DNA of 36,901 nt from Octopus sinensis (taxonomy: Eukaryota), in NCBI RefSeq assembly GCF_006345805.1, contig NW_021836851.1, forward strand, positions 1 to 36,901, written 5' to 3'. This document shows positions 4,294 through 36,813 of this stretch, piece after piece. A program made the translations under genes and the position numbers. Every line of letters starts with the position of its first letter. The first letter of the stretch is position 1. The notes beneath the pieces were generated by a model. That model was given only the letters and a program-made list of their open reading frames with translations, was not told the DNA's origin and made no database searches.

Positions 4294-4833
4294 TTAAAAT
4301 TTGGTAAAACTCTTCTTAGTAGTTCCAGTCGCAGACTGAACCTTAAGAACAGAGAAGCTGACGGTTTTACTCAACGGTCTACATTCTCCCAAAAGAACAA
4401 TATCGCCTTCTTTGGCATCCCTGAATGCCGGAGACATATGGGCAGAAATATTTTGATGCCGTTTCTCATACTTTCCATATTTGCGAATATAATGAAGACT
4501 AGGCCGCACAGCAACAATAGTTCTGTTCATCTTCATTTTTTTGATTGTGGCTTTGATAAGTCGTCCTCTGATTGAAATATTTCCAGTAAATGGGCATTTC
4601 TTGTCAATGTAGGTACCATTTATAGCCTAAATTGTAAAATATTAAAAATTACTTCTGCAGGAGTCTTAATGCCCAGGCCAACATTTTTGACATATCGAAG
4701 GTTCTGTTTTTTTGTTATTTTTGAAGGTTTTTTATTTAAGAACACAGTCGGCTGACGGGCAAAGTGTCTATCTCCCTAAATAAATGAAAATCGTATGATT
4801 TTAAAGAACTTTATCGACAGTTGTAACACCCAT
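4294..4833 (-). CDS. RPS11: 40S ribosomal protein S11 (uS17), 2 introns (34, 26 nt)
   Basis: [24 protein letters not shown]...[37 protein letters not shown]...KMNRTIV...[26 protein letters not shown]...[17 protein letters not shown]...KKSFTKF*. Confidence 0.97.
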
Positions 4834-5214: not shown

Positions 5215-7633
5215 ATGTCCACAAATGGATCAGATATTGCAAGTCTAACAAGAAAATTAAATTCATTAGTTATAAATTGTGTGTTATTTTTAACAGTCGT
5301 CATCTCTCTTTAAACTCAAAATAGAAGATTCCTCATTCCACAACACTCAAGAAGAAATAAAACGTGTTTATGCGGATTTTGAAAGAATGGTATACATATA
5401 AAATAAAATCAGAATAACATGTCAAATATATTTGATCGGGGAAAACTTGAAGATTTATTAAAGCAAAAATTCTTTTATTTACCATCATTTTCAATTTATG
5501 GAGGTTCAAACAAATCCTAATTTAAAGGCATTCAAGGTCTTTACGACTATGGTCCAATTGGCTGTGCCACTCAATCCAATATTCTTGCAATATGGCGAAA
5601 ACATTTTATTTTGGAAGAGAAAATGTTAGAAGTTGACTGTTCTATTATAACTCCTGAACCTGTCCTGAAGGCCTCGGGTCATTTAGAACGGTTTTCTGAC
5701 TATATGGTCAAAGACATGATTACAGGCGCCTGCTATCGGGCAGACCACCTTATTAAACGTATTATATTCATATATTTTTAGAATTTCTTGAATTAAGGAT
5801 TTCGAATACAAAATGTGAAAATGAATGCAATAAGTTAAGAAATATCATTGATTTGGTATTTTTCTAATTTGATTATTTCAAGTTGGATGGATTGACTCAG
5901 AGCGAGATGAACGCGGTTCTTCGGGAGTTTGAAATTAGAGCCCCCAACACTGATAACCCACTGAGTGATCTAATGCCTTTCAATCTTATGTTTTCTACCG
6001 CAATTGGACCTTCGGGTTCTGTAAAAGGGTTATATTTTGAATGTTAGTTACAGTTTTTTACGACCTGAAACAGCGCAGGGAATTTTTGTTAATTTTGATG
6101 CTTTATTGCGGTTTAACCATCAAAATATTCCCTTTGCTGCAGCTCAGATAGGAAAAGCCTTTCGTAACGAAATTTCTCCTCGATCGGGTCTTCTCAGAGT
6201 TCGGTTCAATTTGTTTTGCTATCAAATCAATTAATAAAACGATTTAACTAATTTAGTGAATTCACAATGGCAGAAATTGAACATTTTGTTGATCCAGATG
6301 ATAAAAGTCACCCAAAATTTGATAAAGTGGCTTCTCTCAAATTGTCTTTGCTGTCTTCTGCTGACCAAATAAATGGGCGACCGAGTAGAGAAGATCTCAC
6401 ATTGGATGAGGCCGTTAAATCAGTTTTATTTTTAAATATATTTTTAGGGTTTGATTGCTAATCAGACACTCGGCTATTTTATTGGCAGAATTTATTTGTT
6501 TTTGATTCGCGTTGGAATAAATCACGACAAATTGCGATTTAGACAGCATCTGACAAACGAAATGGCACATTATGCATGTGACTGTTGGGATGCAGAGTGC
6601 AAGACTTCTTATGTTATATGTTTATTACAATTTCAAAGGGCTGGATTGAGTGTGTTGGATGTGCAGATCGGTCTTGTTATGACCTATGTCAACATTCTGA
6701 GGCTACAAAATCGAAATTGGTTGCCACTCGTCATTATAGCAAACCTGTTTATATATTTATTGTTCATTCAAGATTAAAAAAACCATAACCTGCGCAATTC
6801 CAATTGCTTCTAAAATTAAAGAGAAGTACAAATCGTCCACGAATTCAGTTTTACAAAGTTTAAAAAATATGCCGTCTGATGATGCTATCAAACTAAAAAA
6901 GGATTTAGATGATAAAAAGTTAATGAAATAAATAATAAAATAGAATTGGATTTATCGACATTGAGGATCAACAAATTGAAATTTCGACAGAAATGGTACA
7001 ATTCAAACAATCTGAAAAAAACGTTTCAGGTTAATTTTAGCTGAGTTTTTCAGACGAGGAGTATGTTCCGGGAGTTATTGAACCTTCCTTCGGAGTTGGA
7101 AGGATTATATACTCTATTTTTGAACAAAATTTTTTATGTAGAGACGGAAGCGACACGAGAACGGTTCCTTCATCTCATAAAAATATTTTCAGTTTATCGC
7201 ACTTCCACCGCAGATTTGTCCTTATAAATGTGCTGTGTTTCCACTTGTAAAGAATGAGTCGCTTATTAAAATTTCATCAGAAATTGGTTTTTCAAATTTA
7301 TGTTATTTTATTAGAGGATTCGCTGTATGCGTTGGAAATTTCTTACCGGTCTGACAACTCTGGGGCCTCCATTGGAAGGAAATACGTACGAAATGATCAG
7401 CTCTCAGTTCCCTTCTCCGTGACTGTTGATTTTGACTCCATAAATGATTCGTCGGTTACTATCCGCGATAGAGATACAATGTTGCAGATTCGTGTCCCAG
7501 TTGTCCCCGTTTTAAATAATTTCTATAGATTGATGATGTGCCAAATTTAATACGCTCATTGTGTTCGACTGGTTCAGATTCTATTACGTGGCGGGAGGTG
7601 ATACTACGTTATCCTCTTTTTACTTTTAGTTAG
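5215..7633 (+). CDS. GARS1: Glycyl-tRNA synthetase (eukaryotic homodimeric type), about 15 micro-introns
   Basis: Class II motifs [102 protein letters not shown], plus the anticodon-binding domain [24 protein letters not shown] possible upstream in-frame ATG lies at 5167. Confidence 0.96.
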
Positions 7634-8200: not shown

Positions 8201-8429
8201 TCCTTTGAATCCAATTAAATATATAAATAAAGGTAAACCAAATAAAGACAACAGCGCTACATAATGAAAATAAATTAAGCCGTTTATGATAATTACTTTT
8301 AATAAAGGTTAACCATTATATAAAAATATAATTTTATTTAATATGAATATTTTTAATTATTATTTAGGGTTTTTCTTGATTAATTAACACTATGAGCATT
8401 ATATTTAAGATTAGTTGCTCGATGACCTA

Positions 8430-8502
8430 ACTGTGCCCACGGCCGCACATTCATCGACTCACGGCCGCATGCGGCCGTCACTGCCGCACTTGCGCACCCC
8501 TG
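8430..8502 (-). mobile_element. Solo terminus of a hAT (Buster/Charlie-type) element
   Basis: The minus strand reads CAGGGGTGCGCAAGTGCGGCAGTGACGGCCGCATGCGGCCG..., a typical Charlie/Buster end containing an 18-bp palindrome (8461-8478). It is flanked by TTATAAAT, which fits the nnnTAnnn target consensus. No partner end is seen. Confidence 0.65.
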
Positions 8503-8536
8503 TTATAAATATTCGATTTCGCACAGTTAAATCAAA

Positions 8537-8973
8537 ATGTTTTGTTTCCTATTTTAGCCTGTTTAATCTCTATCGAAGGTTTTTGATGGTTAATATTAAT
8601 TCTTAGGAAACATGTTTGGTTACCTCATGGATGATGTCAATTTAGATTCCGTCAATGATCCGACGGTATTTATTTCATATTAATTTCTACCATTTAGATT
8701 ACAACTACAGGTTCAACTGCAAGTTGAGATTTGATTTATAACTTAATTCATAGAAAAAATTGATCACGATTCCGTCAATCACGAACCATCAAATTTGGCT
8801 TACTCAATTGTGGCTATCTCGGTTATGGCTCAATTACTTTATTACTAATTATATTAATTTACATCTTAACTAATAAATCATTCCCGGAAGTATCAAAAAT
8901 TAAAATTATACCTGAATTCACCATTAAACAGAGCAAAGAATGTATAGTCTGCGTTACCTCTGACTATAGCTAG
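8537..8973 (+). CDS. Orphan small single-pass membrane protein, 3 micro-introns, one probable 1-nt homopolymer error near the start
   Basis: Predicted M(FL)FPILACLISIEG (signal-like)-NMFGYLMDDVNLDSVNDPT-IYNYRFNCK-KIDHDSVNHEPSNLAYSIVAISVMAQLLLLLIILIYILT (TM)-NKSFPEVSKIKIIPEFTIKQSKECIVCVTSDYS*. Three GT-AG introns keep the frame. Confidence 0.5.
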
Positions 8974-9013
8974 AGAGACTGATACTGATTCAGTATGTAT
9001 AATTACAACATTA

Positions 9014-9909
9014 TAGTGCATCCTAGAAAGATAAATAATAATCCTATTATTATAAAGAATGATCCTAAGATTATAAATACAAATCCCAAAAAGATAAATA
9101 ACGATCCCAATATTATAAATAAAAATTACAAAGTGCGTAAAGTAAGGATAATAACATATGGAAGACAATGTTTGCAACCGAAAAATACGAAAGACACTCA
9201 CATTTAATTTATTTAATCAATTTCTAAGATTAAGAAACAATATTCCTGTTAAAGAAATTTCCAAAATAGTTGATATATCACCTTCTGCAATTTACAAAAT
9301 TTGTAAATTTTCGGATGAAAATGAAAATGTTGATTTCTATGCTTATGTACGGTCTAAAGGCCCTAAGAAAAAAGATAACCGTGAAAAATTGAAAAAATTA
9401 CAAATATTATAATGAGGATAATTCTTGACACAATTAGGTGTAGAGAAAAGCTTTTTACAAATTAAAACAACAGTATATCCATAAGCAGATCAAAAATCAA
9501 TAGATTGTTTAAAGAATCAGATTTAACCAGAAAACGTTTGAAGAACGTTCAAAAGTTATTCTCACACAAATTCATAAAGATTCTATTAAATATTACGCAA
9601 CAAAGTTATCAAAACATTCTTTAATAAAAGAATTATTTTTTTGGATGAAAGTGGATTCAACTTACATACATCCATTAATTATGGCTATTCTTTACCTAAT
9701 ATTGAACCCTTATTATTTCAACAAAGTTATAAAGGCCAAAATGTATCCTTTTGTGGAATAATGTCATCAATGTTGACATTAACATTAAATTTTATACGAA
9801 TTATTTATAATATTGGGATCGTTATTTATCTTTTTGGGATTTGTATTTATAATATTAGGATCATTCTTTATAATAATAGGATTATTATTTATCTTTCTGG
9901 GATGCACTG
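9014..9909 (+). mobile_element. Internally deleted IS630/Tc1-like transposon, ~110-bp TIRs, copy 1
   Basis: TA on both sides. The TIR (C/T)AGTGCATCCYAGAAAGATAAAT... is made of five ~21-bp subrepeats. The frameshifted transposase N-half has an HTH (VKEISKIVDISPSAIYKI) and the first catalytic D (DESGFNLH...YGYS), but the rest of the DDE domain is missing. Confidence 0.88.
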
Positions 9910-10015
9910 TAAATATTGTTGAAATTACAAATAATAATTAAAACAAAAACTAAATAATGACTAGAATTTTTTAACAACACCCAACAAGCACACAAGAGTG
10001 ACCCACAACCAATAA

Positions 10016-10083
10016 GTCACAGTCCGATAAAGAAACACGCCGTTAATGAAACGCAACGGCGTGTTTCATTAACCGACTGTGAC
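10016..10083. repeat. 68-bp hairpin / micro-MITE (29-bp arms, 3 mismatches, 10-nt loop), copy 1
   Basis: gtcacagtccgataaagaaacacgccgtt-aatgaaacgc-aacggcgtgtttcattaaccgactgtgac. Confidence 0.85.
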
Positions 10084-10122
10084 ATTTAATATTTCAAACT
10101 CCAAAAACATGAAAAAAGTGCA

Positions 10123-11505
10123 TTAAGGGAGTAAGGAGAAGAATCCGGAGACAGGCTTAGTCTTGTGAAGAAAGTCTCGACTGAAGGTGTCTCTGAGGAC
10201 ATCCCTGACAGCAGCCTTACTAAAGTCATCTCGAATGGCTACAATGGACACGACCTGTTCGGGGGTGATCTGGTCGTACTTGTCAATAAACTCCTACACA
10301 TAAGACAGGACAGAACTGTGATCTCAATGAACATCATCGACCTGTCCTCCTGCTTTAACAGTCTGAGCATATCATCCAAAAAGTGGAAAGAAGGGGAGGG
10401 AGGGAACTATCGGCCAGCCGCCCAAACAACGTCTCCAACTTGTGACATGGACTACTGCCCTCTTCCAATTGAGTTTGCTGAGGGATGTGAGGGTGTGGGT
10501 ACAGTGCGTCGACATAGGCCAACAGGAGGTGGTCTCTGAGTCTGTGGAGGAGGGGAGTGGGGTGACAGAGTTTGGAGTAGGAGGTTATTGGAGTTGGCAA
10601 TCATGTAGTGGGTGAAGAGGGGAGGACACTCCTGTCCTGCCGGTGTTGGATTAGACACGTCAGCTCGTCTACTATATATAGGAGGAGTACGTCTGTAGTG
10701 GGGGAGGAAGGAGATGAGGGAGTCGAGGGACACTTCCATTGCCCTTCCCAGGAGAGAATACCCCTCCACTTGCCTTATCACTCTCAATCGTTGTTCGTGC
10801 ATCCCCACCACTGAAATGTACAGACAAGTCAAAATTTATCACTCGAATTGGTCTCGGGCTCTGTCCTCGAATGCCAATCCGCCCTGTCCTGTTCCAGTCC
10901 CTTCCTCATACACCACCCCAATTCCTCTGAGTAGTGGGCCAGGAATCTGCTTAGTCACTCACCATACCCCTCTATCAGTCCCTCCATCACCTCCTCACTC
11001 ACCAATGGCCCACACACTCAAAAGTCATACCCCACCTTTATATCCACGAAGAAACACCCACATCTGCTATATATACTCACTCACTCACACTGCCTTGTCC
11101 AACCAATTAATCAACGACAGCATCTGATTCCCCTCTGCCTCACTCACCAAGTACTCCAACTACTCCTCATTCTCAACACATACTCGCTCACTCACCACCC
11201 TGTGGTAGCACTCACTGTATTCACTCAACATGTTGTACTCACGGGGGAAACATTCCTCACTATACGCCTGGTCACTCACTATAATATACTCCTATCACAC
11301 ACAGGTCCGCCTTCGTCACCTCCACCACACTCTCCAGGTATTTTAGGATCCACGTCTCTCCCCTCTGTCCTCCACTTGACACCCTTCCACTCGTTCCACA
11401 ATGTTTTACCAATCAGTGAGAAAAACGTTTTCTCAGGCATTTTGGTCGTCCTTTTGGCCTAAAGTTTGTCCTTTCAAACAGTTCCTCAAAACTGGCATCA
11501 ATAAT
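10123..11505 (-). pseudogene. EXOC3: Exocyst component Sec6/EXOC3 fragment (5'-truncated, internally deleted), GC-rich, copy 1
   Basis: Spliced translation IDASFEELFERTNFRPKGRPK, DLCVIG-AYSEECFPREYNML, NQMLSLINWL, LIEG-FLAHYSEELGWCMRKGLEQDRADWHSRTEPE, HYMIANSNN, EFIDKYDQITPEQVVSIVAIRDD aligns collinearly with recalled EXOC3 (IDRRILDRKKQTGFVPPGRPK, DLIVAKNLMVQCFPPHY, NEIVSLLTWV, AWLRKALETDKKDWVKETEPE, QYMIAIINN, KYPDIRDDHIGALLAVRGD). Introns are 21-24 nt. Confidence 0.85.
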
Positions 11506-11705
11506 GTCACCGTCCATTGCCGGACCGTACATACTTTAAAACAAAAAAACATATCATTTCAAATAATAATGACTTAATGATGACAATAAATTAAAATTAT
11601 ACCTGAATTCACCATTAAACAGAGCAAAGAATGTATAGTCTGCGTTACCTCTGACTATAGCTAGAGAGACTTGATACTGATTCAGTATGTATAATTACAA
11701 CATTA

Positions 11706-12590
11706 TCTAGAAAGATAAATAATAATCCTATTATTATAAAGAATGATCCTAATATTATAAATACAAATCCCAAAAAGATAAATAACGATCCCAATATTAT
11801 AAATAAAAATTACAAAGTGCGTAAAGTAAGGATAAATAACATATGGAAGACAATGTTTGCAACCGAAAAATACGAAAGACACTCACATTTAATTTATTTA
11901 ATCATTCTAAGATTAAGAAACAATATTCCTGTTAAAGAAATTTCCAAAATAGTTGATATATCACCTTCTGCAATTTACAAAATTTGTAAATTTTCGGATG
12001 AAAATGAAATGTGTTGATTTCTATGCTTATGTACGGTCTAAAGGCCCTAAGAAAAAAGATAACCGTGAAATAATTGAAAAAATTACAAATATTATTATGA
12101 GGATAATTCTTTGACACAATTAGGTGTTAGAGAAGCTTTTTACAAATTAAAACAACAGTATATCCATAAGCAGATCAAAAATCAATAGATTGTTTAAGAA
12201 TCAGATTTAACCAGAAAACGTTTGAAGAAACGTTCAAAAGTTATTCTCACACAAATTCATAAAGATTCTATTAAATATTACGCAACAAAGTTATCAACAT
12301 TCTTTAATAAAAGAATTATTTTTTGGATGAAAGTGGATTCAACTTACATACATCCATTAATTATGGCTATTCTTTACCTAATATTGAACCCTTATTATTT
12401 CAACAAAGTTATAAAGCCAAAATGTATCCTTTTGTGGAATAATGTCATCAATGTTGACATTAAAATTAAATTTTATACGAATTATTTTATAATTTGGGAT
12501 CGTTATTTATCTTTTTGGGATTTGTATTTATAATATTAGGATCATTCTTTATAATAATAGGATTATTATTTATCTTTCTGGGATGCACTG
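11706..12590 (+). mobile_element. Internally deleted IS630/Tc1-like transposon, copy 2 (left terminus missing ~8 nt)
   Basis: Same TIRs and transposase fragment as 9014-9909. The left end reads attat-ctagaaag instead of attatagtgcatcctagaaag. Confidence 0.88.
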
Positions 12591-12697
12591 TAAATATTGT
12601 TGCAATTACAAATAATAATTAAAACAAAAACTAAATAATGACTAGAATTTTTTAACAACACACCCACAAGCACACAAGAGTGACCCACAACCAATAA

Positions 12698-12765
12698 GTC
12701 ACAGTCCGATAAAGAAACACGCCGTTAATGAAACGCAACGGCGTGTTTCATTAACCGACTGTGAC
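12698..12765. repeat. 68-bp hairpin / micro-MITE, copy 2
   Basis: Identical to 10016-10083. Confidence 0.85.
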
Positions 12766-12805
12766 ATTTAATATTTCAAACTTCAAAAAACATGAAAAAA
12801 GTGCA

Positions 12806-15695
12806 TTAAGGGAGTAAGGAGAAGAATCCGGAGACAGGCTTAGTCTTGTGAAGAAAGTCTCGACTGAAGGTGTCTCTGAGGACATCCCTGACAGCAGCCT
12901 TACTAAAGTCATCTCGAATGGCGACAATGGACACGACCTGTTCGGGGGTGATCTGGTCGTACTTGTCAATAAACTCCTACACATAAGACAGGACAGAACT
13001 GTGATCTCAATGAACATCATCGACCTGTCCTCCTGCTTTAACAGTCTGAGCATGTCATCCAAAAAATGGAAAGAAGGGGGAGGGAGGGGACTGTCGGCCA
13101 GCCGCCCAAACAACGTCTCCAACTTGTGGACATGGACTACTGCCCTCTTCCAATTGAGTTTGCTGAGGGATGTGAGGGTGTGGGTACAGTGCGTCGACAT
13201 AGGCCAACAGGAGGTGGTCTCTGAGTCTGTGGAGGAGGGGAGTGGGGTGACAGAGTTTGGAGTAGGAGGTTATTGGAGTTGGCAATCATGTAGTGGGTGA
13301 AGAGGGGAGGGACACTCCTGTCCTGCCCGTGTTGTTGGATTAGACACGTCAGCTCGTCTACTATATATAGGAGGAGTACGTCTGTAGTGGGGGAGGAAGG
13401 AGATGAGGGAGTCGAGGGACACTTCCATTGCCCTTCCCAGGAGAGAATACCCCTCCACTTGCCTTATCACTCTCAATCGTTGTTCGTGCATCCCCACCAC
13501 TGACATGTACAGACAAGTCAAATATTTATCACTCGAATTGGTCTCGGGCTCTGTCCTCGAATGCCAGTCCGCCCTGTCCTGTTCCAGTCCCTTCCTCATA
13601 CACCACCCCAATTCCTCTGAGTAGTGGGCCAGGAATCTGCTTAGTCACTCACCATACCCCTCTATCAGTCCCTCCATCACCTCCTCACTCACCAATGGCC
13701 CACACACTCCAAAGTCATACCCCACCTTTATATCCACGAAGAAACACCCACATCTGCTATATATACTCACTCACTCACACTGCCTTGTCCAACCAATAAT
13801 CAACGACAGCATCTGATTCCCCTCTGCCTCACTCACCAAGTACTCCAACTACTCCTCATTCTCAACACATACTCGCTCACTCACCACCCTGTGGTAGCAC
13901 TCACTGTATTCACTCAACATGTTGTACTCACGGGGGAAACATTCCTCACTATACGCCTGCTCACTCACTATACACCCCTCGACATAAATATTGGTGAATC
14001 TTCAACTTACTTCATTCATACAAAGAATGATTTAATTTTTTCTTCAGATATATTTTAAAATCTGATAAAATTGATAAAAATTAATTTAATTATTTAAATT
14101 TTGAAATTTTGTCTAAGAAATTTGGAAAAACCAACGACTTTCATTGGCATAAAATTTGGTTATTGTGAGATTAATATGTAGAATAACCTCCTTTGCCGAA
14201 TAGATCTCCCAACACCTTTTTTTCATTGACTCAACTAATTTTTCAAGTGTTTTTGGTGGAATAGAATTCCAAATATCTAATAGATTTTTCCTTCAGTGCC
14301 TGAATGTTCTCATTTTTTTTTTGCCTAATTTGAACCTTCATATAAGCCCACAAATGCTCTATCGGATTTAAATCCGGAGATTGCGAAGGCCATTCTAATT
14401 TTTTAATATTTTTTTCGCGAAAATATTGAATAATCATTTTTGATGTATGGCAGGGAGCGATGTCTTGTTTAAAATATAGTCAACAATCCCCATTTTTTGT
14501 ACAGAAAATGGCAAATTATTGGTCAAAATAGATTGATATTTTGCAGAATTAAGCGTTTTGTCTATAAATACCAAATAGCCTACCCCATGATAGGAAAAAC
14601 AACCCCACACCATGACTTTCCCTAATTTTTTATTACATCATAATTTACCTTTTCCAAATTTGACAATTGGAGTAATATTTTCGAATTTATTCATTTCAAA
14701 TTTTTTTCTATGCACAATTTTTCTTTTTTAGATCGGTAATAATTCAAAAATACATTCATCAGAAAAGATTATTGATCTGAAATCATGGTCTGAAATTTGA
14801 AGAAATTTTTGGACAATCTCGAATCTGGAAACCATGTGTTTTTTTGTTAGAAGTGGTTTTTTCTTTGCAATTCTTCCGAAAATTCCATTTTTATTTAAAT
14901 TTCGTATTATGGTTCGAGACGAGACACGTGTTCCAGAAAACTTTTCTATTTCATTAGAGAGTTCAGAAGCAGTTAAAGATGAATTTTCCTCTGATGTGCC
15001 TACCAAATGATTAATTTGCACATTATTCAAAATTGATAGTCTTCCAGAACCATGTTGGCGGTCATATGATCCAGTTTTATTGTATTTCTTGATAAAATTT
15101 ACGACTGTTGAATATGGAACACCGGTTTCTTTAGAAATTTTAATATATGACATATTTAAGTCGTATAGCGCAATTATTTTCCCTTTCATAAACGAATCGA
15201 GAGTATTATATCTAAAAATTTTTTTATAAGATCAATCTCTAAATACTAGCATAATTTGACGGTTTAAATTTTATAACCAATTTTTATGTCACTAACCTAA
15301 TTGCCGACATGCTTTAAATTTCTTGCAATATTAAAATTTAAATCTATTTTAATTATAAATACAAAAAAATATTATTTTAGAAGATCTAAAGGATCTTAAA
15401 GTATGAATTTATTCGTTTTTAAATGAAAAAAGCAGGAAAGATTAATAACCAAATTTTTTGTCGAGGGGTGTATTACTCCTATCACACACAGGTCCGCCTT
15501 CGTCACCTCCACCACACTCTCCAGGTATTTTAGGATCCACGTCTCCTCCCCTCTGTCCTCCACTTGACACCCTTCCACTCGTTCCACAATGTTTTCACCA
15601 ATCAGTGAGAAAAAACGTTTTCTCAGGCATTTTGGTCGTCCTTTTGGCCTAAAGTTTGTCCTTTCGAACAGTTCCTCAAAACTGGCATCAATAAT
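12806..15695 (-). pseudogene. EXOC3: Sec6/EXOC3 fragment, copy 2, split by a Tc1 insertion in a micro-intron
   Basis: Duplicate of 10123-11505. The 5' part (15473-15695) reads KRFFSLIGENIVERVEGCQVEDRGEETWILKYLESVVEVTKADLCVIG. It has the same internal deletion as copy 1. Confidence 0.85.
13973..15470 (-). mobile_element. Full-length Tc1 (DD34E) transposon, 1498 bp
   Basis: TA target duplication (13971-72 and 15471-72). 23-bp imperfect TIR CACCCCTCGACA(T/A)AAA..TTGGT. Transposase at 14171-15310 with HTH, GRL, SDE, VMVWGC, QDIAPCH and WPSQSPDLNPIEHLW; 34 residues separate the second D from E. It carries one in-frame TAA and two probable homopolymer frameshifts. Confidence 0.95.
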
Positions 15696-15897
15696 ATATT
15701 AATTACAACCTTGTCCAAAGATTTCATACGAAATCCAGATTGAAATAACTTTTTTTTCAAAATTCATGAAATTTCCAATACATAGTATAATCTGAATTGA
15801 ATTAAAAATTATTACTTTCATAATTTCTGCTAAATTATGTGATTTTCCGATTTGATTTATATTCTTTTTTATGTTGGATATGCTCTGAAAAGATATA

Positions 15898-17109
15898 CAG
15901 TGAAACCTCTCGAATCCGCCGCTTCTCGAATCCGCTTGTTTTAATCAAAAATTTGATATTTCTTATGAATGATTCTTGAATCCGCTCCTCAAGTATTATG
16001 AAAAATAATTTTTTATTAACATTTTAAAATTTTTATTACACGTTAAATTGTATTTTTGTAATGCGTCGTTGTGTTAGACTTTCTATCAACGAAAAAATTT
16101 ATATACTACGTTATATTTCTGACAACCCATTTGTTTCTGCACCTCAAATTTCCAGGATTTTTTCTTCACGATTAAAAAAGAAAATTTTTCCGAAAACTAT
16201 AAACGACCTTAAATCAAAATCGGACCTTTTGAATAGGACTGATGTCAAAAATTAAACATAATGAGAATTCCAAAACTCAAATTTAATGAAATTGATGTAG
16301 CGATGATAACATGGATTGACTTAATGGAATCTAGTGGAGCAATTCTATCAGATTCGATGTTAATTGCAAAAGCTCTTAAATTTTGAAAAAATTTTCCAGA
16401 ATTTAAAGCAAGTCGTGGGTGGCTAGAAAAGTTTAAATTACGAAATGGTATCAAGTCAGAAAATTTCATGGAGACACTGGATCAGTAAATCATGATGAAA
16501 AATCTATTGCTGATTTTAATGAAACAATCAGTTTAAAAACTGAACAATATGGATTGGACAATGTCTATAATTCAGATGAAAGTGGTGTTTTTTACAAGGC
16601 GATTTGTTCTAAACATGTGTGCACTAAATCAAGGCCTGGAATAAAGTTATTGAAGGATCGATTTTCTTTACTATTATGCGCAAATTGTTCTGGTTCCGAT
16701 AAAAGAAGGCCTGTAATGATAGGAAGATTTAAAAGTCCAAGATGTTTTAAAAATTTCAACATTGGAAAATATGTTACCTACACCCATTCCAATAAGACAT
16801 GGATGAACCCTGAAATTTTTAACAAGTGGCTCAGTTATTTTGATTGTGAACTTGCGAAGCAAAAAAGAAAAATTCTACTTGCAATAGATAGATGATCTCT
16901 AAAATATTATGCGAATTGAGGAAATGTTATAAAATTTCTGATAATTTGAATATAAATAATTTGTGTATTCAGTCATTTGTATATAAAAAGAAATATTTAA
17001 TCTATATTGTAAGTTCATGTTTTAACTATAAAATTTTATTTAAATTGCCTCTCGAATCCGCCGATTTTTTGGTCGGTCCCAAAATCGGCGGATTAGAGAG
17101 GTTTTACTG
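15898..17109 (+). mobile_element. pogo/Tigger-type transposon, C-terminally deleted
   Basis: TA flanks. 24-bp TIR CAGT(G/A)AAACCTCTC(G/T)AATCCGCCG. CENP-B-like HTH (FKASRGWLEKFKLRNG) and DDE_1 motifs (NSDESGVFYK, KDRFSLLLCANCSG, WMNPEIF, ILLAID), truncated after the second D. Confidence 0.92.
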
Positions 17110-22647: not shown

Positions 22648-23316
22648 ATGGCTGTTTGACTATCACATTTAGCTTTAGGATAATTTACAAGAGATACCTC
22701 ACGCGGTAGTCCTACTTGCCAAGCAGGCTGGAGAAGTGTAAATTCGCTTGAGCTGATATTTTTAAGATGATGAAGGCTCTGAAAAGAGAACTTTTATTTG
22801 AATCAAAAGGAACTGGCAATGACGTGGTCACAAAAACAGATAGAATAATTGAAGAACAATTAAAAACATTGCTAAACACAGATGAGCGTTTTAAAGACCA
22901 CAAGTGAAATAGAAATAAACAATTCGTAGATTTATAGGCAAGAAACTGTTGATGCCTGTGAAAAATGTAATCTAACAGATGCCATTACGTGGATTGTCGA
23001 CCCTATTGATGGGACTACTAATTTTGTCCATAAATATCCACATTTTTCAATTTCCATTGGAGTTACAATTTTTAAAAAAGTAAAATTAGGTCAAATACTT
23101 CTAGCCAGTATTATACAATATTGCAATAAATGGTCGTGGTGCTTTCAAAAATAGACAAAAAGTATAAAAATCAAATATTTCTGGTAACCCGACTTGAAAA
23201 TTATTTTTGAATTGAACCAATCTCTTGTCATTGCTAATATTGTGGATGGTCCTAATGATCACATTGTTCAAACAAAGATGTCAAATAATCAAAGACTGCT
23301 ACCACACGTTGCAGGG
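22648..23316 (+). pseudogene. IMPA1: Inositol monophosphatase (IMPA1/2-like), apparently 3'-truncated
   Basis: MA-DNLQEIPHAVVLLAKQAGE...DVVTKTDRIIE...FIG.ET...TWIVDPIDGTTNFVHKYPHFSISIG...GRGAFKN. There is a 1-nt deletion at FIGEE, and homology stops at HVAG. The C-terminal WDxAAG half was not found downstream. Confidence 0.8.
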
Positions 23317-24629: not shown

Positions 24630-25175
24630 ATCTCCGTGATATAACAAATGATGCAAATATTGGTTTTTCTGGAAACATGAATTGGTCGTTATCATTCATA
24701 TTTTTCAAATTAATTTGTTTTTTGGACGGTTCCCAAAGAATCTGTTAAGTTTCATCAATGGATTATTGTCCAACTTCCCATCGATATGTTTGAGTTTCTT
24801 CTGTATTTTTAGAGCGCATTTCTTGTATTTGTTTACAACGGAGAAATCACATTACGACAATTGGATCTGGAGGAAACATTGCATTCTTCTGTATTTTTAG
24901 AGCGGAATTCTTATATGTGTTTACAACGGAAGAATATATACATTTAAAATTGATTCATGCAGCGTTTTACAAAATACAAATCACATTACGACAATTGGAT
25001 CTGGAGGAAACACGGCATTCTACTTGATATCTCCACAATATTACTAATCAGTGTCAGTTACTCCGGAGTATTCATAACGCAAAGTGAGGCTATTCAATTA
25101 ATCCACGATGCAATACGACAGGTGTCGATGACCAACCGATTCACAGGAGGATTTTCTAATAATATACTTTCATAA
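24630..25175 (+). pseudogene. Divergent proteasome beta-subunit-like fragment with internal duplication
   Basis: ITNDANIGFSGN, GILICVYNG...HITTIGSGGNTAFY and AIQLIHDAIRQVSMTNRFTGGF resemble Ntn-hydrolase beta-subunit motifs (GSG; AIYQATYRDAYSGG). Confidence 0.45.
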
Positions 25176-26129: not shown

Positions 26130-26700
26130 AAGTCAAATCACAAGAGTTTTTCTGAAAATTGATATCAATTTCTGATCATGTCGCTTTTTAAATCTGTCAA
26201 GCCGGCCATTTGAAGCTTTGAAAGTGTTAGGCAATTTCCTTTATAAAAGGACCGGATATTGAAACCTTATCCTCTCGTGGACTCACTGGAATTATGGTGC
26301 TGGCGCAAACTTTTGAATATAAATTGGTACGACAAAGTGTCAAATGTCGTTGTTCTCGAAAGGATTAAACCTACACTGTCGCTTGTGGCGAAAGTTTGGA
26401 AGCAACAATTATCATATTTGGGGCACGTGCTTCGGGAGAATGATATAGGAAAAGAAATCCTGCTGTCTTCGTTCGCTGGAAAAAGGAAGCAGGGTAGACC
26501 AAAACTAAACTGGACATCTGAAGTAGTGAAACTTACCGGACATCATTTGTCGGAAATAGCAGAGCTGGTGGGGATAGAGTTTCGTAGAGGGACTTGTTTT
26601 ACAGAATCGCCAATGGCCAGAATCGGCTGAATATGGCTTAACCTAACCTATCCTCTCGTAGTTTCTGAAATATTTTTATTATCTGTATTATAAAATAATT
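26130..26700 (-). mobile_element. Tigger/CENP-B HTH remnant interrupted by an RTE insertion
   Basis: KASNGRLDRFKKRHDQKLISI at ~26150-26215; NISGPFIKEIA just upstream. Confidence 0.6.
26279..26648 (+). mobile_element. 5'-truncated RTE retrotransposon insertion with TSD
   Basis: ELWCWRKLLNINWYDKVSNVVVLER...LSYLGHVLRE...GKRKQGRPKLNW. It has a (TAACC)n tail and an 11-bp TSD TATCCTCTCGT at 26268-26278 and 26649-26659. Confidence 0.9.
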
Positions 26701-27840: not shown

Positions 27841-30657
27841 TTATTTAAAAGTAGATGTTTTCCCCTTGGTAAACTTTTTCTTGGAACGAATTTTCTCAAA
27901 AATCTAAATATCTATACACAAATACGTAACAACCCCCTTAGTCTTTTTCCGAGGGTTTAGTTTCCCATCTTTCTTGCCTAAAAATATAATACAGCCACCA
28001 GAACCTTTATTTTCATGAACTGAAGTTTCTCTGACCTTACTTTGATAATCAAACGGTGTGAAATGATCTGTTTTCTTAATCTACCAAATAAGACTACAAA
28101 AATGCCTTTTTGGGTAAAAAATTCTTAGCCTCGATGGGATTCACCACGAGTTTCTTGTCACGTTTTCCGGAAAATGAATAATAGGACTGCGTCCTGACCT
28201 CATTTGATGGATTAAACTCTTCATTAGTGATATTATCCTCCTGGACGACCATCTTTTCTTCTGACTTGATAATATTTTCCTTGAATTTCCACTTTGACAA
28301 AGACTATTGATTCATATTTAAAAATAAACCTGTAAAAGACAATGTGTCGCCATTAAATCCTTAATCTTTGATTTTGAATAAATCTAATGGGAGATGAAGT
28401 AATTAAACCCACATGATATAATCCTATCCTACTCAATTCTGTCCCATCCAACGATTTCATCAATTGAGACCCAATACGAGACTACAAGTATACAATTAAA
28501 CCAGATTACACCTTTAATGTATCTGTGACCTTTTTAGTAGGATTCACCCTGTAAGCATCGCTCGCAAATAAGCCAGAAATATTCTTCCGATCAACTAATT
28601 AGTTAGTCAAAAAAGTAAAACAAACCGTATAACTCATTTTTAGCCCAATTATTGTCGGTCCCCGTAAAATCGTGTAAATGAACAAAAGAAGTCACTTCTG
28701 TTTTGACACTCGGAATATTCGGTTGAGTAGACATCTTAAACTCAGAATAAACCTCGTTTAAAAAATTGTCAATCTAACATCATTTAAATCAAAATTATAC
28801 AGCTTCGTCAGTAAGCGTTGAAGCCTTTACAAAAAATGAGAATATCTCTTCATGATATATACGAATGAGTGGAGGGAGAGGATTACAACAGGCTGTAATG
28901 CCTTCTCGGTCATTCGGCATTTTAAGACACAGTTCAAGCAGCATATTGGCTGACATTACATAAGCTTCGCTCTCGTCCTCTAAGCGGGCTATTCGATCTC
29001 GCCACTCATGTAACAAAATCAACGCATATTTTTGACGGGAATTTAATTCCAAAGAATTATTGATCAGCTTTAAAGAATCTAAATGGGAGAATTCTTTCTT
29101 TTTATAAACCTAATGAACTATTTAACTGGGGAATCTCACCTTAAGGCACAGCTGAGTACTTTTTTGGTAAACTTTATACAAGAGAGCATCATTTCCATTA
29201 TTAATGAGTTCATTCTTCATGTTGTCGTATATATAAAGTAAATAATGTGTATCTTGCGACGCATATTTGAGCATATCTTTGGGAAGAGGTCTTAGAAATG
29301 AATGATTTGCCACAACCTTACACGCCAATCGGCTAGTTGGTAGCCTTTGTTGCAGGGTATTCCAATAAATCTGTATAAAAGATAGGCTAATGAAAAGCGT
29401 GGATATCCCAATGTTCGTGCTGCCTGTCCCGTGTCAAACATGTTAACAACATAAACTGAAAAATCCTTTTGTAGCCAAATAATATCCGAATCTGACCCAT
29501 GGAAAACCTTTAATATTAAAAAATCAAATCAAAAATAAATATTAAATAACAATTACTTTAAGAATGTTGGGATCAGTGAACACTTTATTAAGGACATTTA
29601 GTTCATGACGGAGTGAAAGTGCGTCGATTACGTAGTTTGACTGTCGAGTAGATATCTGTATAAGACAGGTAAATCCTTGAAATGATCGATACGAATGATG
29701 CTATTACTAATTATGGCAACTGGTGTACCTCTAAATCAACAGAAAATTCCGTCGTAGTAGAAAGAATATCAATTAATTGATTCAATTGTTCGATTTTGTC
29801 TATAAAAATAATTTGTTCGTCGTCAAATGAAGTATAATTCTAGAATATAATTATGATGGAACCTGAGGTTGGAGTCTTTCTAGCTGTCTTTTCGGTACGT
29901 TGAACTGCAAAATTTCGTATTTGTAAGGATGGTCATAAAATTCAGTTTCATCTACCAATATTATTAAAAAAATATTAAAGAATTTAAATCAAACAAAAAT
30001 ATACCATCATGCCTTAAGGAGTTATACTTGAAGGTGATTTTGGCAACAAATTTTGATCCTCTTGAATTGTCAAGTTCATCACGAAAGTACATCTGTGGCC
30101 TGACGACATTTTTAGCAGTGAGCAAAGTGAACTATACAGATTTGATAAATAAAATTACTTTTTTGTCTGAATTTAGATTATTGTCAACAACGACTAGAGT
30201 TTCGGGTTTTTTGAGTCCACATTCCTCATCAAATGAATTATTCTGTTTAAAATAACACAATTTTTGTTATACCACACGCTCCAGAATAATATCGTTGATG
30301 TCGACTAGTTTTTCCATGCTGTCACTTATATCAGTAAGACTATCCTTTGAAAAAATGTCGAGTCGAATCATCGAATGGCGAAGAAGCTTCGAAATTCTAC
30401 ATCGGTTTATATTTGTATAAAATAACAATTTTGTTATCTTTTTTTCTTCGATCTCCATTAAATCCTTAAATTGGGGAAATAGAGAACAGTAATCGTCATA
30501 ATCATCTGAATTTTGAGGGAGATTATTCACAGATTGAATACTTTTGCATAAATTATTTATTAAAATCTATTTTTTAAAATTAAAAATCGTTTACTTTTTC
30601 AAAAGATCCCCATTCAGATAAATATTCATCGACTTTAGATGGTCGTTTCATATCCAT
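27841..30657 (-). CDS. EXOSC10: Exosome component 10 (Rrp6/PM-Scl100), multi-intron
   Basis: PMC2NT region [24 protein letters not shown] exonuclease [76 protein letters not shown] domain [18 protein letters not shown]...CCNPLPPL. Ends GKTSTFK*. Confidence 0.95.
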
Positions 30658-32899: not shown

Positions 32900-33380
32900 T
32901 AGACTTTTAACACATGAAACTTTTTTACGAACACCAGCTCTCCTGAGAAAAATTTTGGAGAGATGCCTCGATTATTATTTCGCCTTTATACCCAGCTTTA
33001 ATAATCGATTTGCACGTCAGAACCGCGATAGATTTCTACCGTTGTTTCAACTTCCTTCATCTTAACCAGATATTGTTCGGCATCTTTTGGTTCTTAAAGC
33101 ATTAGCGAACACTCCCTGGTAAACTGTAATTACAGTTAGAAGCGTATGTTGCAGGTTTAATACCTTCACCTCAAGTTACTTTTATTTCGCAGCATGAAAT
33201 AACTTCATTAGACTTTTTAATATAGTAATCTTCTTGGTCCGTGTTTTAAGACAGGTAGGATCGATCACTCATGCATGTCAATTATTTAAAGGCTAATCCT
33301 CCGTACTCAACAACAAGCGGCTAGAGTTATTACCCTAACAATAAACAGGGTACACAGCCATGAAAAAACTAGCAACTATA
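32900..33380 (-). mobile_element. Possible degenerate non-LTR RT remnant
   Basis: GEGIKPATYAS and IAVLTCK...EASLQN loosely follow the GVRQG-YADD-LQ spacing. Many stops. Confidence 0.3.
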
Positions 33381-34600: not shown

Positions 34601-35399
34601 TCAAAAATCAGTTAAATTTAACTATAAGATTTAAAATTTTACAAACGAAAAACATATTCCAAGAAACTATAAATATTAATAATAAAATATAAACCGTGAC
34701 TAAACAAACACTCCCACTGACTGCCGTTAATGGAATTTTGTTTTCTTCGATTAATGATATTATTTTATGCACGCATCCCTAAAATACATTAAAAAGTAGA
34801 AAACAGTTTCATAAATGTTAATTTTAAAAAGATTTTCAGAAATATAACAACTTGATGTAATATTTCCATTATAATCGTCAGGGGAATAAGCACCGCAGCA
34901 TTGGAAGGTTTTTTGCCAAAAGTCGACTTCTGGACTGGTTTCTTCATAATTTTTAATGACCCATAAAAACCCACTTTTAAATTTTTCAACACACTAAAAA
35001 TAACTATTAACACATACGCTAGATGTGTGAAAATAAAATAAGGACAGGATAGTTAAGACGAATCCACAAACGAAAAAAAGAATGATAACATACTATAGTA
35101 ATTTATTAGAAAAATTAGTCTACAATTATTCTGCAAAAAAGACGCTTTTTTGTTTTCAGTGATAAAATTCCACATATTAATCCAATAAAAATCATTACAG
35201 CAATAATTATATAAAAAATCCCTGAATATTGAATAGTTTTTATCGACGGATTTCCCAGATTGAGATAGTTCCGGAGAACCATGGCTCCAGCATAGACAAA
35301 AATTTCTGTAATTAACTATAAAAATAAAAATTAATCATATTTTTATACAAAAAGAAGTATTACGTTCAACCAAGTAAAAAGGGGACGTATAACATTCAT
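34601..35399 (-). CDS. Tetraspanin (divergent), multi-intron; 3' end approximate
   Basis: Four hydrophobic segments. The large extracellular loop carries the hallmark CCG (FWQKTFQCCGAYSPDDY...SSC-GCVHKI). Confidence 0.75.
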
Positions 35400-36732: not shown

Positions 36733-36813
36733 TACCAGCAGTGGGATTCGAACCCACGCACATTACTGTAATACCACCTTAAGCTACCGCCTTAACCGCT
36801 CGGCCATGCTGGC
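36733..36813 (-). tRNA. tRNA-Leu (AAG), 81 nt, long variable arm
   Basis: GCCAGCA-TG-GCCGAGCGGTTAAGGC-G-GTAGC-TTAAGGT-GGTAT-(variable arm)-GTGGG-TTCGAAT-CCCAC-TGCTGGT-A, followed by T-runs (Pol III terminator). Confidence 0.92.

Follow-up and report, generated by a model that had tools for sequence, protein, structure and literature searches.

How did a GC-rich piece of an exocyst gene come to lie in AT-rich DNA that is full of transposons? This question is raised by contig NW_021836851.1 (assembly GCF_006345805.1, filed under Octopus sinensis). We analyzed all 36,901 nucleotides (nt) of this contig, which we will call the window. The gene in question is a partial copy of Sec6/EXOC3 at 10123-11505, on the minus strand. 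This fragment is one of a tandem pair of truncated, intron-bearing copies whose ancestral reading frame was intact, and it does not match the composition of the five native genes in the window. We established the anatomy of the pair and the order of events that produced it. We tentatively propose that they are young non-processed pseudogenes, copied as DNA from another locus of the same genome or of a very close lineage. (By "resident genome" we mean the genome that the window belongs to.)

A truncated Sec6/EXOC3 gene

Across 500-nt windows, GC content is 0.46-0.53 over 10001-11500 and 0.49-0.53 in a second island at 13001-14000; elsewhere it is 0.22-0.43. Positions 10124-11505 are 49.3% GC, as compared to 31.5% for the window outside of the repeated block described below. 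With its introns removed, the minus strand of 10123-11505 matches the Sec6 family in Pfam (PF06046; E = 2.8e-21) with 76.1 bits, which is above the curated cut-off of 29.7 bits. The match covers profile positions 67-327 of 537 and one C-terminal stretch.

We searched 1.84 billion representative proteins exhaustively with HMMER and obtained 74 matches to the fragment (best E = 7.5e-22, identities of 20-36%). The named matches were all EXOC3 proteins from metazoans: lamprey, hagfish, beetles, Trichuris, an oribatid mite, Trichoplax, Strongyloides, a caecilian, a mayfly, crinoids, a sponge, and a tardigrade. The best Sec6 matches, at 24-30% identity, are spread across Metazoa. When we compared the reconstructed protein (see below) to metazoan EXOC3 proteins using blastp, residues 13-279 aligned to residues ~238-505 of the subject (E = 1e-33, 30% identity), and a second block aligned residues ~306-403 to ~645-746.

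By sequence similarity, the fragment corresponds to the last ~55% of a Sec6/EXOC3 protein of the metazoan type. Residues ~236-512 and ~645-746 of the animal proteins are represented in it in the same order, and it retains the conserved motifs GRPK and YMIAN. It differs from them in its low identity (only 24-30%) and in lacking ~230 N-terminal and ~100-115 internal residues. More precisely, alignments begin at subject residue ~236-250 of a protein of ~750 residues, so the N-terminal ~225-240 residues are absent. The internal gap, relative to a typical EXOC3, falls exactly at intron 5. A full-length Sec6/EXOC3 would have an N-terminal coiled-coil region and complete C-terminal helical bundles, which this fragment does not, and we found no N-terminal Sec6 exons elsewhere in the window. 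Because the first ~230 codons and any visible promoter are missing, the fragment would not yield an exocyst subunit.

A first-pass annotation of this contig, made from its letters alone, had described a GC-rich and collinear EXOC3 fragment that lacks ~200 N-terminal codons. The GC content and the PF06046 match agree with this description, and its coordinates were accurate: 10123 is the final base of the TAA stop codon (10123-10125). The N-terminal codons are indeed absent, but by the alignment starts their number had been underestimated.

We did not find a close relative of the fragment in a word-indexed protein search, in the exhaustive protein search, or in a metagenome scan with six peptide patterns. 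Among 15 billion proteins and the metagenome contigs, there was no donor or near relative, and the top identity was 30%. The top-scoring Sec6 relative in blastp of the reconstructed open reading frame (ORF) was P0011, which is 29% identical and is from a compact metagenomic eukaryote (ENA ERZ11425636 and ERZ28597622; Logan ERR10857032). In that genome, Sec6 contains a 437-codon exon and adjoins lipoyl synthase. Given its large exons and its identity of only 29%, we rejected P0011 as a close relative or as an example of a micro-intron genome.

Six micro-introns and one reading frame

All six introns of the fragment run from GT to AG and are 21-25 nt long (Table 1). For the reconstructed frame, we aligned the two copies of the fragment, took the state of copy 2 at six sites, and removed the six introns. 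The six sites are five 1-nt gaps in copy 1 and a TGA codon at ~11020, which is GGA in copy 2. The result is a single ORF of 416 codons that continues through to the stop codon. In both copies, there are stop codons immediately upstream of exon 1.

Five of the introns had been listed by the first-pass annotation; all five are present and are needed for an open frame. It had also proposed a frameshifting junction at ~10584 with ~90 codons missing. Internal codons are missing there (~100-115 residues, rather than ~90), but there is no frameshift: the interruption is the 25-nt intron 5, at 10542-10566. Because six GT..AG introns are retained, the fragment is not a retrocopy, and because these introns are just 21-25 nt, its source was not a vertebrate. 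Both origins had previously been considered unlikely, and rightly so. With introns present, and with no A-tract found after the 3' flank, the fragment is not a processed pseudogene.

We rejected two other models of the frame. A 32-nt intron at ~10812-10843 is not supported, as copy 2 is in frame there and aligns to EXOC3 (DKYLTCLY...), while copy 1 merely has a 1-nt deletion. Alternatively, the C-rich block might be an inverted segment that contains the "missing" codons, but the minus strand of this block encodes the conserved THYMIAN motif.

A tandem unit with nested transposons

The fragment had been reported as a single one. Instead, there is a tandem pair, with the second copy at 12806-13972 and 15474-15697. 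The repeated unit is ~2.6 kb: 8897-11505 recurs at 11588-13972 and 15474-15697, with ~99% identity overall (97-100% by blocks) and a period of ~2685 nt. Each unit contains ~115 nt of distal flank, a Tc1-like element of ~896 nt, ~210 nt of proximal 3' flank with a hairpin, and the EXOC3 fragment. The Tc1-like element of the second unit (11706-12590) has lost its left 8 nt. Between the units is a junction of 82 nt, which has no match in the sequence that precedes 8897 or in that which follows 15697. The first ~30 nt of the junction are GC-rich and add 10 codons to the frame of copy 1.

Because the Tc1-like element is bordered by TA on both sides, it must have inserted into a continuous flank, and the distal flank (8897-9011) was formerly contiguous with 9912-10122. 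The terminal repeats of this element (9014-9909) do not enclose the gene fragment. This is not a Pack-type capture: the element carries TA duplications of its own and leaves the fragment out, and no inverted repeat is common to the two ends of the duplicated unit. More generally, capture inside a transposon is unsupported, since the fragment is outside the inverted repeats.

The hairpin, at 10016-10083 and 12698-12765, is 68 nt long with a 29-nt stem (free energy of -42 kcal/mol, z = -7.1 relative to shuffled sequences). In both copies it is ~40 nt downstream of the EXOC3 stop codon. It has no match in Rfam above the gathering thresholds. A Helitron hairpin is also unsupported: the 29-bp stem is unlike the short 3' hairpin of Helitrons, and Helitron ends were not seen.

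Copy 2 is interrupted by another transposon, within intron 1. It has the TA duplication, the inverted repeats, and the Tc1-type transposase of the Tc1/mariner group, and the transposase remnant (14728-15189) matches HTH_Tnp_Tc3_2 in Pfam (E = 1.5e-12). The transposase frame is broken, so that only an ORF of 153 amino acids remains.

About 400 nt before the start of the duplicated unit, there is a 90-nt patch (8420-8510) of 60% GC in AT-rich intergenic surroundings. It contains a 16-nt palindrome (CGGCCGCATGCGGCCG).

Lesions are private to each copy

Copy 1 is disrupted by a TGA codon at ~11020 and by the loss of single nucleotides near 11425, 11407, 11357, 10833, and 10392. In copy 2, one nucleotide is deleted at ~13796 and one is inserted at each of 13309 and 13128, and intron 1 has taken up the Tc1 element and lost 5 nt. 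No disabling lesion is common to both copies: every frameshift, and the sole nonsense codon, is copy-specific. Because the two copies together give an open frame of 416 codons, all of the lesions are younger than the duplication, and the frame was intact when the duplication occurred. The fragment had left a working gene only shortly before it was duplicated. It keeps its genomic structure, is incomplete, and contains disabling lesions, as is typical of a non-processed pseudogene.

The copies differ by 13 substitutions; at 10 of these, an A or T in copy 1 stands against a G or C in copy 2. The ten coding differences comprise six synonymous changes (C versus T or A at third positions), three non-synonymous changes, and one nonsense change. 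If, as we infer, the changes ran towards A/T, then they fit a GC-rich sequence that is drifting under AT-biased surroundings. This argues against a local process that maintains or creates high GC.

Across the repeat units (8897-15697), 1-nt indels are about as numerous as substitutions. Several of the indels are in short homopolymers, and they are as frequent in the AT-rich part of the unit. This pattern suggests that long-read consensus errors have added to real decay.

The donor had micro-introns

The native genes of the window have short introns too. We inferred 15 introns, which are 23-30 nt long except for a few of 34-53 nt; 8 of the 15 begin with GTT, where GTA or GTG would be usual. Animal introns of under 30 nt have been described only in Myxobolidae and Dicyema (PMC13644364). 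The median intron is 27 nt in Henneguya salminicola, whose genome is 29% GC, and 22 nt in Thelohanellus kitauei and Myxobolus rasmusseni (PMC13644364). Introns of Dicyema acuticephalum are 26.2 +/- 1.9 nt (PMC2222250), and the genome of D. japonicum is 36.7% GC (PMC6736024). Known coding sequences of myxobolids are 31-35% GC, and myxozoan genomes range from 17% to 51% GC (PMC11905887).

Because the introns of the native genes are also 23-30 nt, the donor of the fragment shares the rare gene architecture of the resident genome, and it belongs to the same rare class of animals. The donor is a metazoan with micro-introns: the resident genome or one of its relatives, but not a vertebrate, a cephalopod, or a protist. 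A co-infecting parasite had been suggested earlier, along with a hidden GC-rich compartment of the resident genome. The part of this suggestion that calls for a micro-intron donor holds up, but as the resident genome has introns of ~25 nt itself, the unspecified parasite is narrowed to one of its relatives.

The native GlyRS and EXOSC10 proteins are 63-64% and 54% identical, respectively, to their best matches, which are from chelicerates and molluscs. Among the matches listed for these two proteins, none is from a myxozoan or dicyemid. As a candidate for the resident species, Demodex was ruled out by its median intron of 79 nt. We also looked up four ORFs of the window exactly in searchable protein collections, and none was on record, so the resident species appears to be absent from the collections searched. 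The fragment and the native genes are alike in having no close relatives in these libraries, which fits a single unsampled lineage.

A proposed origin within the same genome

We propose that the pair began as a stretch of genomic DNA that was copied, at the DNA level, into AT-rich and transposon-rich intergenic sequence, where it came to lie tail-to-tail with GlyRS. The copied stretch included the 3' ~55% of EXOC3/Sec6 (seven exons, six introns of 21-25 nt, and the stop codon), followed by 320 nt or more of 3' flank. The mode of origin might be ectopic repair or segmental duplication. A non-autonomous Tc1-like element then inserted into the 3' flank. Tandem duplication of the ~2.6-kb block of flank, element, and fragment followed, with the 82-nt junction between the units, and a Tc1 transposon entered intron 1 of the distal copy. 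Finally, private frameshifts, one nonsense codon, and G/C-to-A/T differences began to accumulate in the two copies.

Leaving aside the source, we consider the anatomy on its own to be highly probable. That the pair are young non-processed pseudogenes whose source was in the same genome or a very close lineage is a tentative proposal, which could well turn out to be wrong. For the source locus, we lean towards the same genome on prior grounds: partial gene duplication within a genome is far commoner than DNA transfer between animals. The rare micro-introns that the donor shares with the resident genome point the same way, as does the equal lack of relatives of either in the libraries. Such a locus would have introns of ~22 nt and a GC content at third codon positions (GC3) near 59%.

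Several observations weigh against a source in the same genome, and most of them concern composition. We compared the fragment to the five native genes in the window (RPS11, GlyRS, inositol monophosphatase, EXOSC10, and tetraspanin); the native range is thus that of ~1.8 kb of coding sequence from one 37-kb window. Exons of the fragment are 50% GC, versus 39% for the native genes. At the first, second, and third codon positions, GC content is 53%, 37%, and 59% in the fragment and 46%, 37%, and 34% in the native genes (GC3 of native exons ranges from 22% to 46%). The excess GC is therefore mostly at synonymous sites. The introns of the fragment have a median length of 22.5 nt (n = 6), as compared to 26 nt for native introns (n = 12 tested; p = 0.004, Mann-Whitney test; p = 0.010 against the short native class alone), and they are 46% GC rather than 22% (p = 0.002). 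The dinucleotide signature of the fragment lies at a distance of 0.240 from the rest of the window. By comparison, 1.4-kb windows of native sequence have a mean distance of 0.067 (standard deviation 0.023, maximum 0.141), and the pooled native exons are at 0.047. Either half of the fragment alone exceeds the native maximum, and the segregation of G and C on opposite strands contributes part of this distance. Dinucleotide signature and intron size are normally constant across a genome. Nor is the GC excess regional, as in an isochore, because GlyRS ends only ~2.5 kb from the stop codon of the fragment. In a different vein, some of the single-nucleotide indels that distinguish the copies may reflect errors in a long-read consensus instead of real decay.

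In its GC3, dinucleotide signature, intron GC, and intron length, then, the fragment has the composition that is expected of a laterally transferred gene, as judged against the range from one 37-kb window. These four measures also uphold the first-pass annotation's idea of a different mutational regime, as well as its remark that the introns of the fragment are the shorter ones. This make-up indicates that the two copies evolved somewhere other than their present site.

The fragment has other peculiarities. Along its sense strand, positions 10900-11400 are rich in G and poor in C, and positions 10500-10800 are rich in C. Between blocks of the one reading frame, the G:C ratio at third positions switches from 62:20 to 17:47 (p = 3e-9, Fisher test). 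The sense strand also contains seven instances of the motif GTGAGTGA, as compared to a single one in the other 30 kb, both strands counted. On the minus strand of 10950-11290, it is found in three introns and three exons; the exon cases read GGTGAGTGAG, encode Val-Ser-Glu, and resemble perfect 5' splice sites. We set aside two other comparisons. CpG depletion as a signature of methylation was rejected because CG (0.41) and GC (0.44) are equally low, which reflects the placement of G and C on opposite strands. The third base of the 5' splice site differs (GTT in 8/15 native introns versus 1/6 in the fragment), but there are too few introns for significance, so we dropped it as a discriminator.

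Alternative origins

It is possible, if rather unlikely, that the fragment and its AT-rich 3' flank were acquired from a related animal with micro-introns, such as a myxobolid or dicyemid in the same host tissue, by break repair or by hitch-hiking with a DNA transposon, and then underwent the same duplication and decay. Differences between species would naturally explain why GC3, intron GC, intron length, and dinucleotide signature all depart from the native genes, and the concentration of GTGAGTGA in the fragment also favors this origin. Modal intron length does vary between related myxobolids (22 versus 27 nt; PMC13644364), and the GC content of myxozoan genomes varies widely (17% to 51%; PMC11905887). 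The intact ancestral frame would imply a recent arrival from a working gene, and Tc1 and pogo elements crowd the site. Yet the fragment is outside the terminal repeats of the neighboring element, so there is no evident carrier, and neither a donor nor anything beyond 30% identity turned up in 15 billion proteins or the metagenome contigs. Transfer of nuclear DNA other than transposons is rare between animals, while partial gene duplication within a genome is common. Also, the native range that the fragment departs from was defined with only ~1.8 kb of coding sequence. We are similarly doubtful that part of a nuclear housekeeping gene, introns included, passed as DNA from one parasitic animal with micro-introns to another (for instance, between two myxobolids or two dicyemids that share a host) and was caught soon afterwards, before its frame decayed.

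An assembly artefact would require two related species or haplotypes in the sample, with either a chimeric contig joined via shared transposons or a false duplication of two alleles as a tandem pair. Samples of parasites often consist of material pooled from host tissue (PMC6736024), a transposon lies 3' of each copy, the ~1% divergence and the insertion polymorphism of the copies are allele-like, and the many 1-nt indels suggest a noisy long-read consensus. But this is not a simple joining of one allele after the other, because the 82-nt junction matches neither outer flank (before 8897 or after 15697). AT-rich sequence bounds the fragment on both sides in both copies, without a shared repeat at the 5' boundary; the Tc1-like element has clean TA duplications in a continuous flank; and the 2.7-kb unit is shorter than typical long reads. 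Altogether we consider an artefact improbable. Change in place is more improbable yet: a native AT-rich EXOC3 would have turned GC-rich, by GC-biased gene conversion between the copies or by A-to-G/T-to-C hypermutation. The blocks of biased composition could be seen as traces of this, as one block of the sense strand is 38-44% G and 6-15% C while another is up to 43% C, and the third-position G:C ratio flips between blocks (62:20 to 17:47). However, the Tc1-like element and flank in the same unit are still 25-33% GC, and the differences between the copies go towards A/T, not towards G/C. Second positions have stayed at 37% GC while GC3 rose, which is like an ordinary difference in codon usage. 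We rejected hypermutation in particular: the shifts in base composition do not fit, in exons or in introns (relative to native introns, G in the fragment's introns was gained more from T than from A), and hypermutation cannot shorten introns, whose lengths differ. Least credible of all is that one copy is still functional, as the 3' part of a shortened EXOC3 or of a chimeric transcript, with 5' exons beyond the transposons and with frameshifts that are consensus errors. In favor of this, the reconstructed frame is open throughout and its six introns are plausible, and 6 of the 10 coding substitutions between the copies are synonymous. But an excess of synonymous changes is expected from G/C-to-A/T decay at GC-rich third positions. 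Furthermore, no upstream Sec6 exons were found in the window, stop codons directly precede exon 1 in both copies, copy 1 contains a TGA, and a 1.5-kb Tc1 element sits in a 22-nt intron of copy 2.

Relation to known systems

Of the known kinds of features, we assign the fragment to the non-processed pseudogenes, here with an unusual composition. It resembles other non-processed pseudogenes in retaining introns and 3' flank, in its 5' truncation, tandem duplication, and nested transposon, and in its copy-specific frameshifts and nonsense codon. It differs in that its composition, intron size, and dinucleotide signature are unlike those of the five surrounding native genes. Eukaryote-to-eukaryote lateral transfers into parasite genomes are similar in being foreign-looking compositional islands in native DNA, with adjacent transposons and fresh from a working gene. 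In this case, though, the acquired piece would be a dead fragment rather than a functional gene, and the donor would need to share the rare micro-introns. As in transduplication by Pack-MULEs, Helitrons, or CACTA elements, there are two copies of an intron-bearing fragment of a host gene beside a DNA transposon. In contrast to those systems, the fragment is outside the terminal repeats of the Tc1-like element, and its amplification is tandem instead of dispersed.

If the source is in the same genome, then the fragment is an ordinary partial duplicate, yet the genome holds genes that differ greatly in composition and intron size. This would matter for gene prediction and for contamination filters in animals with micro-introns. 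If the source is another species, then this would be a rare and datable transfer of ordinary nuclear DNA from animal to animal between parasites. A move between parasites with micro-introns would be direct evidence that they exchange nuclear DNA other than transposons. With either source, annotation pipelines that are tuned to the AT-rich exons of the resident genome would miss the locus or model it wrongly, and decontamination based on GC content might wrongly discard the contig.

Features of the window

Table 1. Coordinates of the tandem EXOC3 units and of the native genes. A dot indicates that no strand is assigned.
Feature	Position	Strand	Remarks
EXOC3/Sec6 partial gene, copy 1	10123..11505	-	7 exons, 6 introns, TAA at 10123-10125, 5'-truncated; from Pfam, blastp, and alignment of the copies
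Intron 1, 22 nt (gtatattatagtgagtgaccag)	11268..11289	-	open frame requires removal
Intron 2, 24 nt	11160..11183	-	open frame requires removal
Intron 3, 22 nt	11067..11088	-	open frame requires removal
Intron 4, 21 nt	10947..10967	-	open frame requires removal
Intron 5, 25 nt, C-rich (gtcaccccactcccctcctccacag)	10542..10566	-	removal restores frame in both copies; blastp gap here
Intron 6, 23 nt	10294..10316	-	open frame requires removal
Distal 3' flank	8897..9011	.	left edge of duplicated unit; direct repeat D11/D13; TA duplications
Non-autonomous Tc1-like element	9014..9909	.	~112-nt terminal inverted repeats (I1, 97%); TA at 9012-9013 and 9910-9911
Proximal 3' flank, 33% GC	9912..10122	-	holds 68-nt hairpin 10016-10083; inverted repeat I18
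Junction between units, 82 nt	11506..11587	.	absent after copy 2; first ~30 nt GC-rich
Second flank, Tc1-like element (11706-12590), 3' flank, and hairpin (12698-12765)	11588..12805	.	direct repeats 97-100%
EXOC3 copy 2, 3' part	12806..13972	-	from stop codon (12806-12808) up to intron 1
Tc1-family transposon in intron 1 of copy 2	13973..15471	-	26-nt terminal inverted repeats (I23); TA at 13971-13972 and 15472-15473
EXOC3 copy 2, exon 1	15474..15697	-	frame intact, unlike copy 1
RPS11	4339-4620	-	native gene
GlyRS	5431-7500	+	native gene, tail-to-tail with fragment
Inositol monophosphatase	~22933 (22700-23110)	+	native gene
EXOSC10	28800-30500	-	native gene
Tetraspanin	~34844 (34700-34990)	-	native gene

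Native genes lie on both sides of the fragment in the contig, with GlyRS on one side and inositol monophosphatase and EXOSC10 downstream. The window is dense in the remains of mobile elements. Besides the Tc1 elements, there is an ORF for a pogo/Tigger-type transposase (DDE_1) at 16554-16895 (+). Another ORF, at 26259-26630 (+), resembles the C-terminal part of a long interspersed nuclear element; it was recognized by eye and has no match in Pfam. A short array of direct repeats of 88-134 nt is located at 24796-25024.

A piece of eukaryotic large-subunit ribosomal RNA lies at 32957-33228 (-). It is 272 nt long, 36% GC, and decayed; it matches positions 675-954 of the Rfam model RF02543 with 82 bits. 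Many of its base pairs are broken, and it is far from any rDNA context. It is another stray gene fragment in the window. Finally, both ARAGORN and Rfam identify a tRNA-Leu (anticodon AAG) at 36733-36813 (-).

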